A stretch of DNA of 64,000 nucleotides from Hyaloraphidium curvatum SAG 235-1. Its lineage: Eukaryota > Fungi > Monoblepharomycota. The DNA is taken from assembly GCA_025558095.1 (NCBI GenBank), contig JAIVFI010000004.1:620001-684000 (forward strand), in the 5' to 3' direction. The position numbers and the translations under genes are program-made. The first letter of the stretch is position 1. The number at the start of each line of letters is the position of its first letter. The notes beneath the pieces were generated by a model, which had not been told where the DNA came from, ran no database searches, and was given only the letters and a program-made list of their open reading frames with translations. This document shows, piece by piece, positions 39,257 through 51,656 of this stretch.

Positions 39257-39863
39257 AGAAATGGGAGTGGCAAACTTCTGGTTCTTGTTGAGATCGCCGG
39301 CAGCAAATTGTACTGCTTGCGTGGTGTTGGTACTGTACTTCTCCAGAATTCTGCAAAGACTGTTTGCCTCAAGATGATTCTTTTGTTGGGTCTGTCACGG
39401 ATGACTTCCACACCGCCGTGGAGCTGCACTTCACCGAGACAGCGTGATTCATATCGGTTCTCAATCAATGCAATGCACTCTCTGACGAATTCTGGTGGAT
39501 GTCCCGTGCCACACACATCGTCCATGGTCACAAGAAGGATTGCAATCTCTCCTGAGTCGCCCTTGATGCGTGTGTACATGTTGGGGTCCGTTTCGCAGTT
39601 GCGCTTTAGCTCACGCTGATACAGGTTGGCTGCCTGTTTGAGGCCATATACTCCCCGCTTGAGTTTGAGAACGGGGTCCTTGAGAGACAAGTCCCTCCTT
39701 TGGTAAGTCTCGTGCATCTCAACGTAGAGGTCCTCCTCTTCTGCATTGGAATTCAAGAACGCGTTCTTGATGTCCAAATGGTAAAGGGGCCAGTCCATGT
39801 GTGCAGCTATGGCACACTGTGATCTGAAGGCTGCATGGGTTGGCATGGCTGCAAAAGTCTCCC

Positions 39864-41658
39864 TGCTGCTGGAAGGCTCTCGCAGTTTGGATTCCGTGCA
39901 CGGAGATCGACCCTTCATGCAGTGTTCCTTGCCGAGGCACTCTTCTCCCTGGCCAAGGCACGCAAGGAGAAGCTGATCATGGTCTTTGTAGATTTCACAA
40001 AGGCTTTTGACACGGTGGAACACCCCAGGTTATGGCAGAAACTGGAGGAGATGGGTGTACCCAAACTGGTTGTTGACATGTTCGAGATGGCATTCGGGCG
40101 CGTGTGGGGACGGCTCCGGGATGAAGACGGGACCAAGTCAGACTTCATCAAGTTCCTGACCGGAGTGAAGCAGGGGGACCCTCTCTCGTCGCTGTTCTTC
40201 ATCTTGTTCATCAACGACATCACTGCTCTCATGGAGGCCAATGGTGCAAAAGGGATGGATCTGGGCATGGTGTCTAAGGAGGAAGAGGATCAGGAGAGGA
40301 TGGTCAGCTTGCTAGCTCTGTTCTTTGCAGACGACACCACTTTGATCTCGAAGACGGTGAAGGATGCCAAGATGCAGCTGGATCTTCTGTCTGCATATGC
40401 CAGTGCCAATGGGCTGGAGATCAACGTCAGCAAGACAGAGTGGATGGCCAGGAGGATACCTCACCGTGTAAAGCTCATGTACAGGGACCAGGAGCTGAAG
40501 AGGGTTGACAGCTTCAAGCTTCTGGGGTATCAGCTGACCTCAACCGGCCGGAGCAAGGACCATGTGCATGGCAGAGAGGCCAAGATGAACGCTGCTTATG
40601 GGCTCTGGCTCCGCGACTTCAGGGAGCAGCCTGGGATGAGTCCTGACCTCCAGCTCAAGCTCTACAACACAAAGGTCAAGGCAGTGGGCCAATATGGGAA
40701 CCCGTTCATTGTTGAGATGCCGAAGGAGGAGTACCTTGCCGGGGAAAGCACCAGGGACAAAGTGACATGCATGGCTCTTCGTGCCGTCACTCATCTGCCC
40801 AAGTCTACCTCCCTGGCCTGTCTGTATGCGATCACTGGCCAGTACCCCCTTGCAGTTCATGACCACGAGTCGGCACTCAAGTTCCTCATGCGCATCAAAA
40901 CAGCGGATCCTGCGCTGTACCTACTTTACAAAGAGCTCAAGATCGAGGCACTGAAGGGGTCCTGGAACTGGGCCGCCTTCCTGAGGGAACTACTTGCATA
41001 CTATGGCGGCGAAGATGGGAGGGAGATGTGGGTTCTCATGGCCCAAGGAGACTGTGGAGAATCTTGTGAATGGCAAGTTCAGGGAGATCAATGCCCAGAG
41101 GCTCAAGGACAACGACAAACTGCACTTTTGGAGGATGTGTGACATGACCTTTGGTCACATCGGACCGTCCCTGATCCGGATGGAGAAGCACCGGAGGGAT
41201 GTCCAAAAGTTGCTGTGCTCTACCCACGACCTGGAGGTGGAGACAGGCAGGCACCAAGGACTTGAGGTGCAGCAGAGAACGTGCAAGCATGACCCTGAGC
41301 ACATTGGAGACGAACAACACTTTCTGTTTCACTGTTCAGCAAATGCGGAGCGGCGCCAGAAGCTGCAGACTAGATTGGACGCACTAGGCCGGGAGTGGAA
41401 CATGGAGACCTGGCTCTGGGCTCTTAGCATCAATGTAGGAGTTCGAGCCCACGATCAAAGCGATGCGGCAGAAGGAGAAGGCCCTCAACTCCATTGCCAG
41501 CTTCATCTCAAAGTCCATGAAGGACAGGAAAACTGGGAAAATGAAAAAGACACACGAGGACGATGAACTTTGCAATTAGCAGCAAACTCATGGTGTAACA
41601 GCGGCCAAGCCAGGGGCAGGATCGGGTCACCAATGCTATTCTTCTATTCTTCTATTCT
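39864..41658 (+). mobile_element. 5'-truncated young LINE copy inserted in the copia RT
   Basis: Near-identical to ~45812-47599, with a TATTC/TTC tail. TCCC at 39860-39863 and 41659-41662 is the likely TSD, and removal restores copia YGETFAA. Confidence 0.95.
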
Positions 41659-41919
41659 TCCCCGTAGGTCCCAGGAGCCTGGCGGTTGCCATCAACCACG
41701 ATGCCATGAACCGTTTGGTGAGGTCTGGGTTGAGTTTGAGGTCGAACACGTAGTGGGATTTGAGAATTCGGTCCTCCTTGCCACGGGGCCTTTCAACCTC
41801 TTCCCAGACTTCTTTGTCATTGAAAGCTCCATCTTCCACTTGAATTGCCTCATTCCATTTTTCCCATTCGGGCAAAAGCTTTGCCTCCGCAATTGATCTT
41901 GGGATTTGAACCCCATCAA

Positions 41920-43582: not shown

Positions 43583-46500
43583 CTCGACCTGCCGCACGAC
43601 CACAAGGACCGTGAGGCGCTCGTTCAGCGGACCGATGCGCTCAAGGAGATCGTGGTGGACAAGTGGTACCTCACGGGAAATCGCACCTTTGACCTCCAGC
43701 TCACGTTCTCGACCGAGGAGGACCGCGAGACGCTCATTCGGCTCAATGAGGCTGGAGCCCTGAAGCACCTGGCTGCGTACGCGAGCCGCGAGAAGACGTG
43801 GATGCAGAAGAACCGGTCTACTGCGCAGTACCACCTGGTCCAGCAGATGGAGAAGGATGGGATTCCCTTCCGCCGCGACGGCCCGAAGATCGTCTACATG
43901 CCGCCGGAAACAGGCCTGGAAACGACGCTCACCATGGAAAAGATTGAAGCAAAGTCGCGCGAGCTTTGGGAGACGCGCCAGACTGCACGCGCGAACGCTG
44001 GAGAGCGTCTTGCGCGCGGCTAGGAAAGCGAGACTCGGACATGCCTCAAGATACTGTACCAAAACGTCGAGCGGAAGCTCGAGAAGAGCCTCTTTATACG
44101 TGAGCTGCTGCTACACATTGTAGAGTACGATATGGTCGTTTTCGCTGAAGCAAGGTGGACGGGCAAAGGCGAGAAGCGGACTTGGGAGGAGCATATGAGC
44201 AACAACGACATCCGCGCAGAGGTTGCCGCGGTACTGGAAACGTTCGAGGTTTATGAGAAGAGCTGCTCGGAGCATGGTGGAGGAGGGTTGACGGTCTTTG
44301 TGCGAAAGGAGCTACCGCACACCGTACGGACAGACTTGGACCCGATCCTGGACGTCGTGCAGATCCAAGTCGGCGGAGTGAACGTGCTGGGGGCGTACAT
44401 ACCGCCGACGCCAACGCAGGACATAGTCACGCAGGACGAGATGTGGTCGAGGTTCTCAGGGATTGTGGCTGGGTGCGACATGCCGATCGTGATCGGGGAC
44501 CTGAACGCACATGTGGGGATAAGCGAGGCAAACAGCGACGTGCGTGGCACGAGCTTCGGAAAGCGTGTAATCCGGTCGGAGCAGCGCACGGATCGGAGGG
44601 GGAAACAGCTACTTGCACTGTGCCACGAGGAGGAGCTGGTGATCCTGAATGGGCGCCTCGAGCCGGGGGCAACAACTCGCGCAGGAAAGGATGGCGAGCG
44701 GGACAGCACCTTGGACTACGCAATCGTGCCGCAGAGCCGCTACGGGACGGTCACCCAGCTTGCATTTGTGAAGGAAGGCTGGGTCGTCACCTCAGACCAC
44801 ATACATGGCCCTGAGCCTGACCATCAAGGCCAACCTCGTGCGACCAGCTGCGAAGGAGAACAAGCCGCACTGCAAGCCCGTGCCGTGCGACTTCCACTTC
44901 CTCGCAATAATGCGAAACGTCTACGACAAGCCCTGGGTCAAGGAGGCAATGCAAGAGTACGAGCAACTTCAAGCTGGATCCGACAAGTGCAACCGGCTCA
45001 TCCAGATCATGGCAGGGGTGAACAAGGTCGCAAGGAAGAAGTACGACAAGGTCAGCGTACACGAAGAGGCGGACAAGTTCCTCAACGGCTTTGCGGACTC
45101 GGCAGAGAGGGCCGAGATCGATCGGAAGCTGTCACGCCTTCTTGAGCTGCGATCCCTCATGGAGAAGGACGAGTGGAAGAAGGAGTACCAGGGGAAGACG
45201 CGGGAGCTGGAGAAGGAGCGGAAGAAGTTGGAGAAGAGGATGCGGAGGGTTGCTGAGCGAGAGAACTCCAAGCTGCTAGAGCGACTCTTCAGGCGAGAGC
45301 CTAAGGGGTAATACCAGCTGCTTGGAAAGGCTCACGCAAGGCGCAAGGGCAACCCCGTGCCCTTTGCAGAGCTGGTGCGCCACATGGAGATGGTCGCCAG
45401 CGCCGAATACGTGACCAAGATCGAGGAGGATCCAAGGCTCACGTTTCCACCACTTCCCAAGGCCACGATCACGCCTTCTGGAGACCTGCTGCGCCCCATC
45501 ACCCTCAAGGAGCTGGAGAGGGTCTTGAAGAAGGCCCCCAACGGCAAGGCAAAGGACGAGGATGGGATCCGGCTCGAGTTCGTCAAGTACGGGACTGCAG
45601 TACTGAAGCAAGCTGTTGTCAACCTCCTCAACGACGTGCTCAATGGCGTCAAGATGGATGACTGGGGCCAGACACTGCTGGTGATGCTGCACAAGAAGGG
45701 GCCCAAGAACGTGGCTGGCAACTACCGAGGCATCAGCATAGAGAGGACGCTGGAGAAGGTCTTCTCCCTGGTCTGGAACGCTCGGCTAGCTCCCTGGGCT
45801 GAGTGCAACAAGCTGCTGGAAGGCTCGCAGTTTGGATTCCGTGCACGGAGATCGACCCTTCATGCAGTGTTCCTTGCCGAGGCACTCTTCTCCCTGGCCA
45901 AGGCACGCAAGGAGAAGCTGATCATGGTCTTTGTAGATTTCACAAAGGCTTTTGACACGGTGGAACACCCCAGGTTATGGCAGAAACTGGAGGAGATGGG
46001 TGTACCCAAACTGGTTGTTGACATGTTCGAGATGGCATTCGGGCGCGTGTGGGGACGGCTCCGGGATGAAGACGGGACCAAGTCAGACTTCATCAAGTTC
46101 CTGACCGGAGTGAAGCAGGGGGACCCTCTCTCGTCGCTGTTCTTCATCTTGTTCATCAACGACATCACTGCTCTCATGGAGGCCAATGGTGCAAAAGGGA
46201 TGGATCTGGGCATGGTGTCTAAGGAGGAAGAGGATCAGGAGAGGATGGTCAGCTTGCTAGCTCTGTTCTTTGCAGACGACACCACTTTGATCTCGAAGAC
46301 GGTGAAGGATGCCAAGATGCAGCTGGATCTTCTGTCTGCATATGCCAGTGCCAATGGGCTGGAGATCAACGTCAGCAAGACAGAGTGGATGGCCAGGAGG
46401 ATACCTCACCGTGTAAAGCTCATGTACAGGGACCAGGAGCTGAAGAGGGTTGACAGCTTCAAGCTTCTGGGGTATCAGCTGACCTCAACCGGCCGGAGCA

Positions 46501-47599
46501 AGGACCATGTGCATGGCAGAGAGGCCAAGATGAACGCTGCTTATGGGCTCTGGCTCCGCGACTTCAGGGAGCAGCCTGGGATGAGTCCTGACCTCCAGCT
46601 CAAGCTCTACAACACAAAGGTCAAGGCAGTGGGCCAATATGGGAACCCGTTCATTGTTGAGATGCCGAAGGAGGAGTACCTTGCCGGGGAAAGCACCAGG
46701 GACAAAGTGACATGCATGGCTCTTCGTGCCGTCACTCATCTGCCCAAGTCTACCTCCCTGGCCTGTCTGTATGCGATCACTGGCCAGTACCCCCTTGCAG
46801 TTCATGACCACGAGTCGGCACTCAAGTTCCTCATGCGCATCAAAACAGCGGATCCTGCGCTGTACCTACTTTACAAAGAGCTCAAGATCGAGGCACTGAA
46901 GGGGTCCTGGAACTGGGCTGCCTTCCTGAGGGAACTACTTGTATACTATGGTGGCGAAGATGGGAAGGAGATGTGGGAGAAGGACACTGTCTCATGGCCC
47001 AAGGAGACTGTGGAGAATCTTGTGAAGGGCAAGTTCAGGGAGATCAATGCCCAGAGGCTCAAGGACAACGACAAACTGCACTTTTGGAGGATGTGTGACA
47101 TGACCTTTGGCCACATCGGACCATCCCTGATCCGGATGGAGAAGCACCGGAGGGATGTCCAAAAGTTGCTGTGCTCTACCCACGACCTGGAGGTGGAGAT
47201 AGGCAGGCACCAAGGACTTGAGGTGCAGCAGAGAACGTGCAAGCATGACCCTGAGCACATTGGAGACGAACAACACTTTCTGTTTCACTGTTCAGCAAAT
47301 GCGGAGCGGCGCCAGAAGCTGCAGACTAGATTGGACGCACTAGGCCGGGAGTGGAACATGGAGACCTGGCTCTGGGCTCTTAGCATCAAGGAGTTCGAGC
47401 CCACGATCAAAGCGATGCGGCAGAAGGAGAAGGCCCTCAACTCCATTGCCAGCTTCATCTCAAAGTCCATGAAGGACAGGAAAACTGGGAAAATGAAAAA
47501 GACACACGACGACGATGAACTTTGCAATTAGCAGCAAACTCATGGTGTAACAGCGGCCAAGCCAGGGGCAGGTCCGGGTCACCAATACTATTCTATTCT
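43583..47599 (+). mobile_element. APE-type non-LTR retrotransposon (LINE), near full length, inserted in the copia protease
   Basis: ORF1 remnant, APE (YQNV, FAE, YIPP, GDLNAH, STLDY, SDH), RT (NYRGIS, QFGFR, FVDFTKAFDTV, GVKQGDPLS, FADD), C-terminal knuckle and (TATTC)n tail. TSD AAAGA at 43578-43582 and 47600-47604; removal restores MWPLCPP. Confidence 0.97.
45357..47531 (+). pseudogene. LINE ORF2 reverse transcriptase and C-terminal domain (cut off from APE by a frameshift at ~44800 and TAA at 45309)
   Basis: 724-codon open frame with all RT motifs; the upstream lesions are visible in the sequence. Confidence 0.9.
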
Positions 47600-49464: not shown

Positions 49465-50097
49465 TATCCCATCCTCATCCGCTGCCCTGCCGTTAGGAGC
49501 CTTCTTCAGGACCTTCTCGAGCTGCTTGAGAGTGATGGGGCGCAGCAGGTTCCCAGGAAGCGTGATCATGGCTTTGGGAAACGGTGGGAACGTGTGCCTG
49601 GGGTATTCATCGATCTTGGTCACGTACTCGGCGCTGGCCACCAGCTGCATGTGGCGCACCGGCTCTGCAAGGGGCACAGGGATGCCATGCGCCTCGGGTA
49701 TGGCTTTTGCAAGCACCTGGTAGTGTCAGGACGGGCCTTGGGAGATGGCCTAGTCATGGGTTGGTTAGGGAGAGCATATGGGGCAGCCCAAACACCATGT
49801 ACCCCCACTGCTTCTCACTGTGTACATAGACATCCCGCCACCTCGATGCTGTGCAGTCCCCGCTAGGGCCCAGCTGGCCCCTGGGTTCCTGACAGGTAGT
49901 ACACTCTTGCCGCCTGAAGAGCAGCAGCTCCAGGAGCTTGGTGTTCTCCCACACAGCAATCTTCTGCATCTTCTTCTCCAGCTTCTTCCGCTCCTCTTTG
50001 TAGAGTAGGTATAGGGTGGATCGGAATCGGCTGTTTTGATGCGCATGACGAACTTGAAAGCCCACTTATGGTCATGCACTGCACTGCAAGAGGGTAC
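49465..50097 (-). mobile_element. Old scrambled LINE fragments (pre-RT linker and post-RT pieces)
   Basis: Homologous to ~45210-45570 (KKLEKKM..LLRPITLKQLEKVLKKAPNGRAADEDGI) and ~46787-46880. Confidence 0.88.
49724..49894. mobile_element. Solo LTR of a second family (171 bp)
   Basis: TGTCAGGA...TCCTGACA termini and a 5-bp TSD GGTAG at 49719-49723 and 49895-49899. It splits an old LINE fragment. Confidence 0.85.
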
Positions 50098-50980
50098 GAG
50101 AATGGAACAGTATTGGTGACCCGGACCTGCCCCTGGCATGGCCGCTGTTACACCATCAGTTTGCTGCTAATTTGAAGTCTGTTGTCGTGCATCTTTTTCA
50201 TTTCCCCCGTTTTCTGTCCTTCATGGACTTTGAGAGATGAAGCTGGCAATGAAGTTGAGGGCCTTCTCCTTCTGCCGCCTCGCTTTGATCGTGGGCTCGA
50301 ACTCCTTGATGCTAAGAGCCCAGAGCCAGGTCTCCATGTTCCACTCCCGGCCTAGTGCGTCCAATCTAGTCTGCAGCTTCTGGCGCCGCTCCGCATTTGC
50401 TGAACAGTGAAACAGAAAGTGTTGTTCGTCTCCAATGTGCTCAGGGTCATGCTTGCACGTTCTCTGCTGCACCTCAAGTCCTTGGTGCCTGCCTATCTCC
50501 ACCTCCAGGTCGTGGGTAGAGCACAGCAACTTTTGGACATCCCTCCGGTGCTTCTCCATCCGGATCAGGGATGGTCCGATGTGGCCAAAGGTCATGTCAC
50601 ACATCCTCCAAAAGTGCAGTTTGTCGTTGTCCTTGAGCCTCTGGGCATTGATCTCCCTGAACTTGCCATTCACAAGATTCTCCACAGTCTCCTTGGGCCA
50701 TGAGAAAGTGTCCTTCTCCCACATCTCCCTCCCATCTTCGCTGCCATAGTATACAAGTAGCTCCCTCAGGAAGGCAGCCCAGTTCCAGCACCCCTTCAGT
50801 GCATCAAGGCCCTCAACTTCATTGCCAGCTTCATCTCTCAAAGTCCATGAAGGACAGAAAACGGGGGAAATGAAAAAGATGCACGACAACAGACTTCAAA
50901 TTAGCAGCAAACTGATGGTGTAACAGCGGCCATGCCAGGGGCAGGTCCGGGTCACCAATACTATTCTACTTCTTCTATTC
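50098..50980. mobile_element. Fold-back unit of two head-to-head LINE 3' ends
   Basis: 157-bp perfect inverted arms at 50109-50265 and 50806-50962, a 540-bp LINE spacer, tails at both outer ends, and GTAC on both flanks. Confidence 0.9.
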
Positions 50981-51100
50981 GTACTCCTCCTTCGGCTTCT
51001 TGACATTGAACGGGCTTCCATACTGGCACATACTGGCCCACTGCCCTGACCTTCGTGTTGTAGAGCTTGAGTGGAAGGTCAGGATTCATCATCCCTGACC
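50981..51100 (-). mobile_element. Old LINE fragment
   Basis: [22 protein letters not shown], homologous to ~46570-46679. Confidence 0.8.
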
Positions 51101-51656
51101 AGTGCTTCCTTGGTTGCACATCCCAGCACCGAATTGCTTCTTGCACCAACCAACCCCATCTGGTGCCAGCCGCTGCAACGCAAATGCCTCCCTCCACTCG
51201 CCCTTTATTCGGGCTGCCTGGTCCATCGGGCAACAGCCTATCGGGGCGGCCGACTGGGGTGCGGTTCGGGTGCGCGGGGTTTTCCGGCCAACCCATCACA
51301 AGCATCTGCAACGCAAACGCATTTGGCACTAACAAGGGAGTGGAGCACGACCAAGCGTCTCCATCTTTTGCCATACTGATCGCTAGGTCACCGCAAACTG
51401 GAATGGGAAGCCCCCTTTGGTCCAAAACCTGCGGGAACCACGCCACCAGAGGCGTCCCCGGATTCAATGACATGTACTTGGTGGCAACGCGCGAGCGAGC
51501 GTATTCAGATCGGCCGCAGGGAGCGGTGTGTTTTGGTCGTGATTCGGAGGGTGCTCGAAGGCATGAGCGCGGCACTGAGGCCCTCGATCAGGGTGCGACC
51601 TTGATCGTCGAACGCGTCGACCGCCGGCGCGTGTCAGGCGTCAACGGCCCGGCGGA

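Follow-up and report, generated by a model that had tools for sequence, protein, structure and literature searches.

Background

The closest described counterparts of the locus reported here come from the human retrotransposon L1. One report, by Mendez-Dorantes et al. (bioRxiv 10.1101/2025.09.17.676864), describes cases in which one integration site underwent two reverse transcription (RT) reactions and both junctions carry poly(A). In another, also by Mendez-Dorantes et al. (bioRxiv 10.1101/2024.12.14.628481), the two cDNAs of two target-primed reverse transcription (TPRT) reactions recombine, and translocation junctions keep two polyadenylated insertions. The present unit was found in a stretch of 64,000 nucleotides of the fungus Hyaloraphidium curvatum SAG 235-1 (contig JAIVFI010000004.1, positions 620,001 to 684,000), hereafter the window; positions given without a contig refer to it. 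With the human double events of Mendez-Dorantes et al. and Zumalave et al. (bioRxiv 10.1101/2024.08.27.596794), the unit would share two cDNAs, each started from a separate DNA 3' end and then connected to one another, a tail at either outer junction, and either a target duplication or a deletion between the priming sites. The L1 events carry poly(A) tails, were observed in reporter assays and tumours, and join mostly distant sites. Unlike these, the present unit arose naturally and is fixed in a microbial eukaryote; it is associated with a microsatellite tail and a 3' stem-loop, and both of its cDNAs would stem from the same source, with priming sites 0-107 bp apart.

Classical L1 twin priming (Ostertag and Kazazian 2001, Genome Res 11:2059) is comparable in that the 3' end of the second strand primes RT and part of the insert is inverted. 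There, the second primer pairs with an internal stretch of the RNA, what lies upstream of the direct part becomes inverted, and a single tail results. In the present unit, by contrast, the 3' terminus itself is inverted and overlaps the direct part, and both outer ends have a tail.

Two further types of loci offer partial likenesses. Transposon inverted-repeat loci that produce hairpins for RNAi resemble the unit in their long perfect repeat, which would yield dsRNA if transcribed, but the stem is short here and the unit is a single accident. Zepp and ZeppL of green algae form one nested LINE cluster per chromosome, at putative centromeres (PMC3446292, PMC8226300). The H. curvatum LINE is Zepp-like in its setting and not in the fold-back: it inserts into itself and occupies about one island per chromosome-sized contig.

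The LINE family and its retroelement nest

A retroelement nest of 13 kb occupies approximately 37.5-51.1 kb of the window. Two young copies of one LINE lie there, beside LINE fragments of greater age and a Copia-like element; the first of the two was used as reference (positions preceded by A refer to it):

43583-47599, plus strand: LINE copy A, young, reference copy; APE endonuclease ORF, RT ORF, 3' stem-loop, (TATTC)n tail
39841-41665, plus strand: LINE copy B, young, same LINE as copy A

The two ORFs of copy A were matched by the Pfam domains Exo_endo_phos_2 and RVT_1, and its 5' start was placed at 43583, the point from which other copies align. The family belongs to the APE type and has a 3' stem-loop and a (TATTC)n-like tail; searches of PDB and Atlas for its clade returned generic RT matches only.

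At the 3' end of the LINE stands a conserved module, after which comes a (TATTC)n-like tail that is short and variable. Among 43 distinct 3' junctions compared, tails varied between insertions, which argues that each initiation generates its own tail. A non-LINE retroposon (locus L070) carried only the final ~49 nt of the LINE, and a stem-loop immediately preceding the tail was predicted for the LINE, for the arm of the unit and for this retroposon. The common ~49-nt end, together with the predicted stem-loop, suggests that RT initiation is specific to the LINE 3' module. The retroposon itself lies on the minus strand, at ~620-960 of the reverse complement of L070 (contig 39, near 250078). It displays GCTAAACAAACCAATGG upstream of the ~49-nt LINE end and a different, ACCAT/ACCCAT-like tail, and is likely a SINE-like partner of the LINE. 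Its upstream sequence was also encountered in a high-depth contig of possible RNA run X3, a loose end at window position 50916.

Insertion of the LINE into its own copies was very common, and nesting of this kind runs through the whole family, which accounts for a LINE having landed in a LINE at the locus studied. Very short 5'-truncated pieces, of 34-49 nt, were also present. A 26-nt motif of the LINE 3' end, GCCAGGGGCAGGTCCGGGTCACCAAT, had 128 matches genome-wide, grouped in one or two tight clusters per contig. This clustering looks like about one LINE island per chromosome-sized contig, and the islands are candidate centromeres.

Other arrangements of the family were observed outside the window. 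On contig 12 (C12:481400-492250; loci L019, L023-L025 and L030), a head-to-tail array with a period of ~2029 bp comprised at least six repeats, each unit being made of a young LINE 3' fragment (A 47594 to 46361) and an older piece (A 46153 to 45579). In L003:917-1482 (C43:221486-222051), an antisense LINE piece ends at A 46653 and is followed, 34 nt on, by a sense piece from A 46573 to 46658; this inversion with a small overlap resembles classical twin priming.

Anatomy of the insert

The insert measures 883 bp (50098-50980) and has the element 3' terminus and a tail at both of its outer ends. It is made of two pieces joined head-to-head:

50098-50805, minus strand: long piece, 5'-truncated young LINE, 708 bp including its tail (LINE A 46890-47599)
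50806-50980, plus strand: short piece, a second, inverted LINE 3'-terminal copy, ~175 nt with its tail (equivalent of LINE A 47430-47599)
50109-50265, minus strand: left arm of the exact 157-nt inverted repeat; ORF2 end and 3'UTR, variant subfamily
50806-50962, plus strand: right arm of the exact 157-nt inverted repeat, located by script and repeat search
50098-50110, minus strand: left tail, 13 nt, reading CTGTTCCATTCTC on the LINE sense strand
50961-50980, plus strand: right tail, 20 nt, reading CTATTCTACTTCTTCTATTC
50805/50806, no strand: inner head-to-head junction of the two pieces, microhomology 0-2 nt

The long piece contains the left arm and a 540-bp spacer. It was 95.6% identical overall to LINE A 47599 to 46890 (50099-50805, blastn) and matched amino acids 511-704 of ORF2 at 95% (tblastn); identity to copy A reached 98% over 50234-50805. 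A preliminary description of the same DNA had reported exact inverted arms covering the ORF2 end and 3'UTR of the LINE, a spacer close to the young LINE, and a TATTC-like tail followed by GTAC at each outer end, and these features were all recovered. By script, 50109-50265 and 50806-50962 were exact reverse complements over 157 nt, with no extension either way, and the repeat search delimited arms at 50105-50265 and 50806-50966 (161 nt, 99% complementary, 540 nt apart). Alignment and blastn placed the arms at the ORF2 end and 3'UTR of the LINE at 43.6-47.6 kb. The value of 98% for the spacer was obtained with the inner part of the left arm included (50234-50805), and each arm ran outward to its tail and then to GTAC. 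The left and right tails were unlike in both sequence and length.

At the inner junction, ordinary copies continue as ...CAGTGCCTC/GATC (or AATC) on one side and as GGAG/AAGGCCC on the other, the slash marking the breakpoint. Logan contigs from four runs were aligned on 49700-51400; these contigs are short and no listed record bridges a junction. One of them, a 90-nt contig of run X1, matched the arm variant at 50838-50928 without substitutions.

Host fragment and target site

Left and right of the insert lies a single old LINE fragment, whose two parts are collinear and share one orientation:

49994-50097, minus strand: old host LINE fragment, left part (LINE A 46880 to 46787, ~80%)
50981-51090, minus strand: old host LINE fragment, right part (LINE A 46679 to 46580, ~80-81%)
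50094-50097, no strand: left target GTAC, last host bases before the insert, aligned to the LINE A GTAC at 46787-46790
50981-50984, no strand: right target GTAC, aligned to the LINE A GTAC at 46676-46679

No paralogue of the host fragment closer than 81-87% was found in the genome. The host lacks LINE A 46680-46786, between the GTACs at 46676 and 46787, so that the ~110 bp reported missing beforehand amount to 107 bp. Either these 107 bp were lost in the event, or they were previously absent and GTAC represents a 4-bp target-site duplication. Among the insertions of this LINE family, a deletion of 107 bp would stand out as large, the others having changed their targets by about -6 to +7 bp.

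Both priming ends finish in GTAC, for which the chance is ~1 in 256. An endonuclease preference for this motif was considered and rejected, as none was seen at the other junctions examined (43 distinct 3' junctions). The idea that the host flanks were a mutated part of the same event, through editing or a RIP-like process, was also discarded: the differences are mixed substitutions and indels. A separate observation concerns L062:1204-1392 (C37:324511-324699), where a 190-nt 3' piece of the arms' variant 3'UTR subfamily sits 1-3 nt from the equivalent GTAC (A 46787-46790) in a different LINE copy; to the left, the piece adjoins an unrelated LINE piece (A 44949 to 44603).

Source of the arms

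The 3'UTR of the arms differs from those of copies A and B at many positions. An alignment of distinct 3' ends revealed at least nine other genome copies of the arms' 3'UTR type, with identities of 87-90%. Three motifs had been described beforehand as private variants of the arms. They proved to be confined to the two arms within the window, but genome-wide they are partly markers of a subfamily; GACTTCAAATTAG was also present in two of the at least nine other copies of this 3'UTR type. A 56-nt arm probe found exact matches only in the two arms, and three further copies with 3 mismatches.

Four to five changes were nevertheless confined to the two arms among the copies examined, including ACTTC for ACTCC, a TC insertion, GGGGG, and CATGC for CAAGC. 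Since these changes are common to both arms and absent from the other distinct 3'UTR copies examined, both arms come from one source element. An element with the exact arm sequence was absent from the assembly. Within the unit, the ORF2 part (50234-50805) was 98% like the young copies, and the 3'UTR part (50109-50233) belonged to the other subfamily, with 88% identity to copy A; by these alignments the source element looks like a mosaic of two subfamilies.

Proposed origin of the unit

The insert is probably the product of one aberrant retrotransposition of the local LINE, reverse-transcribed from both sides of one break. Both strands of the old LINE fragment would have been cut. The 3' end of the plus strand (...GGGTAC) would then have primed at the 3' tail of a LINE RNA, giving a cDNA of 708 nt that extends to A 46890. 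The 3' end of the minus strand normally begins second-strand synthesis. Here, that end (...GGAGTAC) would likewise have started RT at the 3' tail, on an RNA of the same source, and synthesis would have proceeded for ~175 nt, to about A 47430. Head-to-head joining of the cDNA 3' ends at 50805/50806, with 0-2 nt of microhomology, and subsequent filling in would leave each outer end with a tail and produce the perfect 157-bp inverted repeat. With recessed 3' ends on both sides and a distance of 107 bp between the cuts, the strands in between would have been flaps and would have been lost; alternatively, cuts 4 nt apart, the usual stagger, would have duplicated GTAC. The order of these steps, the use of two RNAs (or of one RNA twice) and the joining pathway are what we infer; copying the same 160 nt twice requires two RNAs or the re-use of one, and such use is an assumption.

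The structure agrees with that of a double-tailed insertion in several respects. The element 3' terminus and its tail abut the target at each outer end, and the target is collinear on both sides, with a deletion or a duplication. The tails, of 13 and 20 nt, differ in sequence and were made independently; their difference, taken with the variation of tails from one insertion to another in the family, points to two separate RT initiations. The inner junction links two 5'-truncated ends with 0-2 nt of homology (CTT in the second example, L065, described below). An RT limited to its own 3' end would explain why the 3' end, and not an internal part, was duplicated at the second priming. Target-primed RT from both ends of a break, one of the two origins put forward in the preliminary description, is therefore supported by true 3' termini, differing tails, common private changes, a collinear host and a second example.

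Recurrence of double-tailed insertions

The loci examined were scanned for an antisense piece that starts from the tail and is linked directly to a sense piece with the tail at its end. This head-to-head scan recovered the unit under study and one independent case, on contig 42:

L065:959-2520 = C42:333553-335114: double-tailed LINE insertion

It consists of GAATAGAATAG and 40 nt of antisense 3' end, joined by the CTT microhomology to a 1522-bp sense copy with its tail. The host is again an old LINE, in antisense orientation and collinear on both sides (A 45855 and A 45851 at the two edges of the insertion), from which CGATCT or part of it was lost (3-6 bp). The 5' end of the sense piece (A 46088) lies 2-3 nt from the insertion point of another LINE in the same host copy (A 46086).

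A third candidate is ambiguous. At C1:390883-393270, an antisense copy of 2287 bp meets a sense 3' end at 393169/393170; the 3' motif lies at 393229, and the tail of another LINE follows within ~20 nt. According to motif positions, eight further pairs of outward-facing 3' motifs within 4 kb are candidates:

Pairs 1-4: C22:406398/407712, C41:94215/95253, C41:98729/102180, C41:102815/106496
Pairs 5-8: C32:245722/248347, C18:426544/429940, C29:317227/320997, C6:567768/570972

The occurrence of a second example in ~43 junctions hints that double-sided events are not rare in this LINE family.

Other possible origins

An inverted duplication at the DNA level, in which a 5'-truncated LINE was inserted and its terminal 160 bp were later copied in reverse by a template switch or fold-back repair, is in keeping with arms that are perfectly identical over 157 nt. 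However, the copy stops at the element 3' terminus and is then followed by a different, longer tail. A DNA copy would keep the same tail and run past the 4-bp GTAC into the left flank, whereas the flanks differ after GTAC. The fold-back template switch, the other origin proposed beforehand, does not survive this comparison, as a DNA copy would include the tail and the two tails differ. Moreover, L065 repeats the terminus-to-terminus build at another site, and a DNA-level origin appears improbable. Still less probable are two independent insertions, namely a 708-bp copy followed by an opposite 175-bp copy placed exactly at its 5' junction, with arms homogenised by gene conversion or issued from the same master. 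The LINE does insert very often into its own copies, and very short 5'-truncated pieces (34-49 nt) exist, but such a history needs a hit at exactly one nucleotide position, with no duplication or loss, and the same rare source twice, and the same coincidence must recur in L065.

It is very unlikely that the inverted piece is an assembly artefact, coming from a chimeric long read or from a collapse in a repeat-rich island. The region is indeed a nest of near-identical LINE copies and is covered here by short Logan contigs only, with no spanning read shown. Artefactual palindromes, however, are symmetric and have no spacer, and the unit is asymmetric (708 versus 175 bp), with biological termini, distinct tails and arm-specific changes. 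In addition, the 90-nt contig that matches the arm variant without substitutions comes from another data set, and L065, on another contig, is built similarly with a different junction. Two other arrangements were also rejected. A nested insertion of a short sense LINE into a longer antisense LINE, as in L041 and L043, conflicts with the right tail, which adjoins the 80% host and not the 98% copy. A classical 5' inversion by twin priming conflicts with the inverted last ~175 nt, which lie wholly inside the coordinates of the direct segment, and with the two tails; the contrast that had been drawn with L1 twin priming, on account of the duplicated 3' end, thus holds and extends to the number of tails.

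Mobile element or hairpin-RNA locus

It had been proposed that the unit could be a bidirectional non-autonomous element, and that it could fold into a long hairpin supplying siRNA against the family. Copies of the unit or of its junction with other flanks were searched for, and none was found among the 40 best candidates per search. With the whole unit as query, the only match of this kind was the unit itself, the rest of the 40 best candidates being ordinary LINE 3' ends that correspond to one half. An 80-nt junction probe likewise gave one full match, the others among its 40 best candidates stopping at position 40-42. By these searches, whose outcome is strong though not exhaustive, the inner junction occurs once in the 32-Mb assembly and there is no second copy of the unit, which speaks against a bidirectional mobile element.

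The proposed folding fared better, in that the long stem was predicted as expected: RNA of the plus strand would form the full stem, at -496.6 kcal/mol versus -276 for shuffles (z -19). Piwi-domain genes are also encoded in the genome, with three loci above the Pfam cut-off:

C5:597912-598970: Piwi-domain locus
C17:196959-197677: Piwi-domain locus
C17:210684-211795: Piwi-domain locus

The two loci of contig 17 are 13 kb apart, in opposite directions. Such matches indicate that Argonaute-type proteins are encoded. Furthermore, the LINE 3' module, which is used by the non-LINE retroposon too, would form the end of transcripts from both strands. We nevertheless regard it as highly unlikely that the unit acts as a hairpin-RNA locus whose siRNA targets the LINE family, or that either of its strands is mobilised as a non-autonomous element. 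It is a single copy with a unique inner junction, none of the runs on record as RNA contained the stretch, possible RNA run X3 had no contig on the arm-specific stretches 50156-50212 and 50840-50896, and inverted LINE copies in these islands amount to many kilobases, next to which a stem of 157 bp is short. The unit is rather a single-copy, dead-end by-product, an inert rearrangement among LINE copies.

A wider reading would make double-sided priming a regular, RT-specific outcome, affecting a few per cent of insertions, because an LINE RT of the stringent type starts only at its 3' stem-loop and tail; hairpins of the islands would then give rise to siRNA that silence the family or mark the islands. 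We hold this to be very doubtful. If it were true, the unit would be one of a class of self-made silencing triggers.

Conclusions

Returning to priming from both sides of one break, the unit would represent a known kind of event in a new setting, that of a different LINE in a microbial eukaryote, and a one-off by-product. It is only recently that two-sided priming has been demonstrated as a step of LINE integration, for human L1 in reporter cells and tumours. The unit would be a clean, fixed natural record of RT primed from both sides of one target site, and the duplication of the 3' end at the second priming fits an RT that needs its own 3' stem-loop and tail to start.
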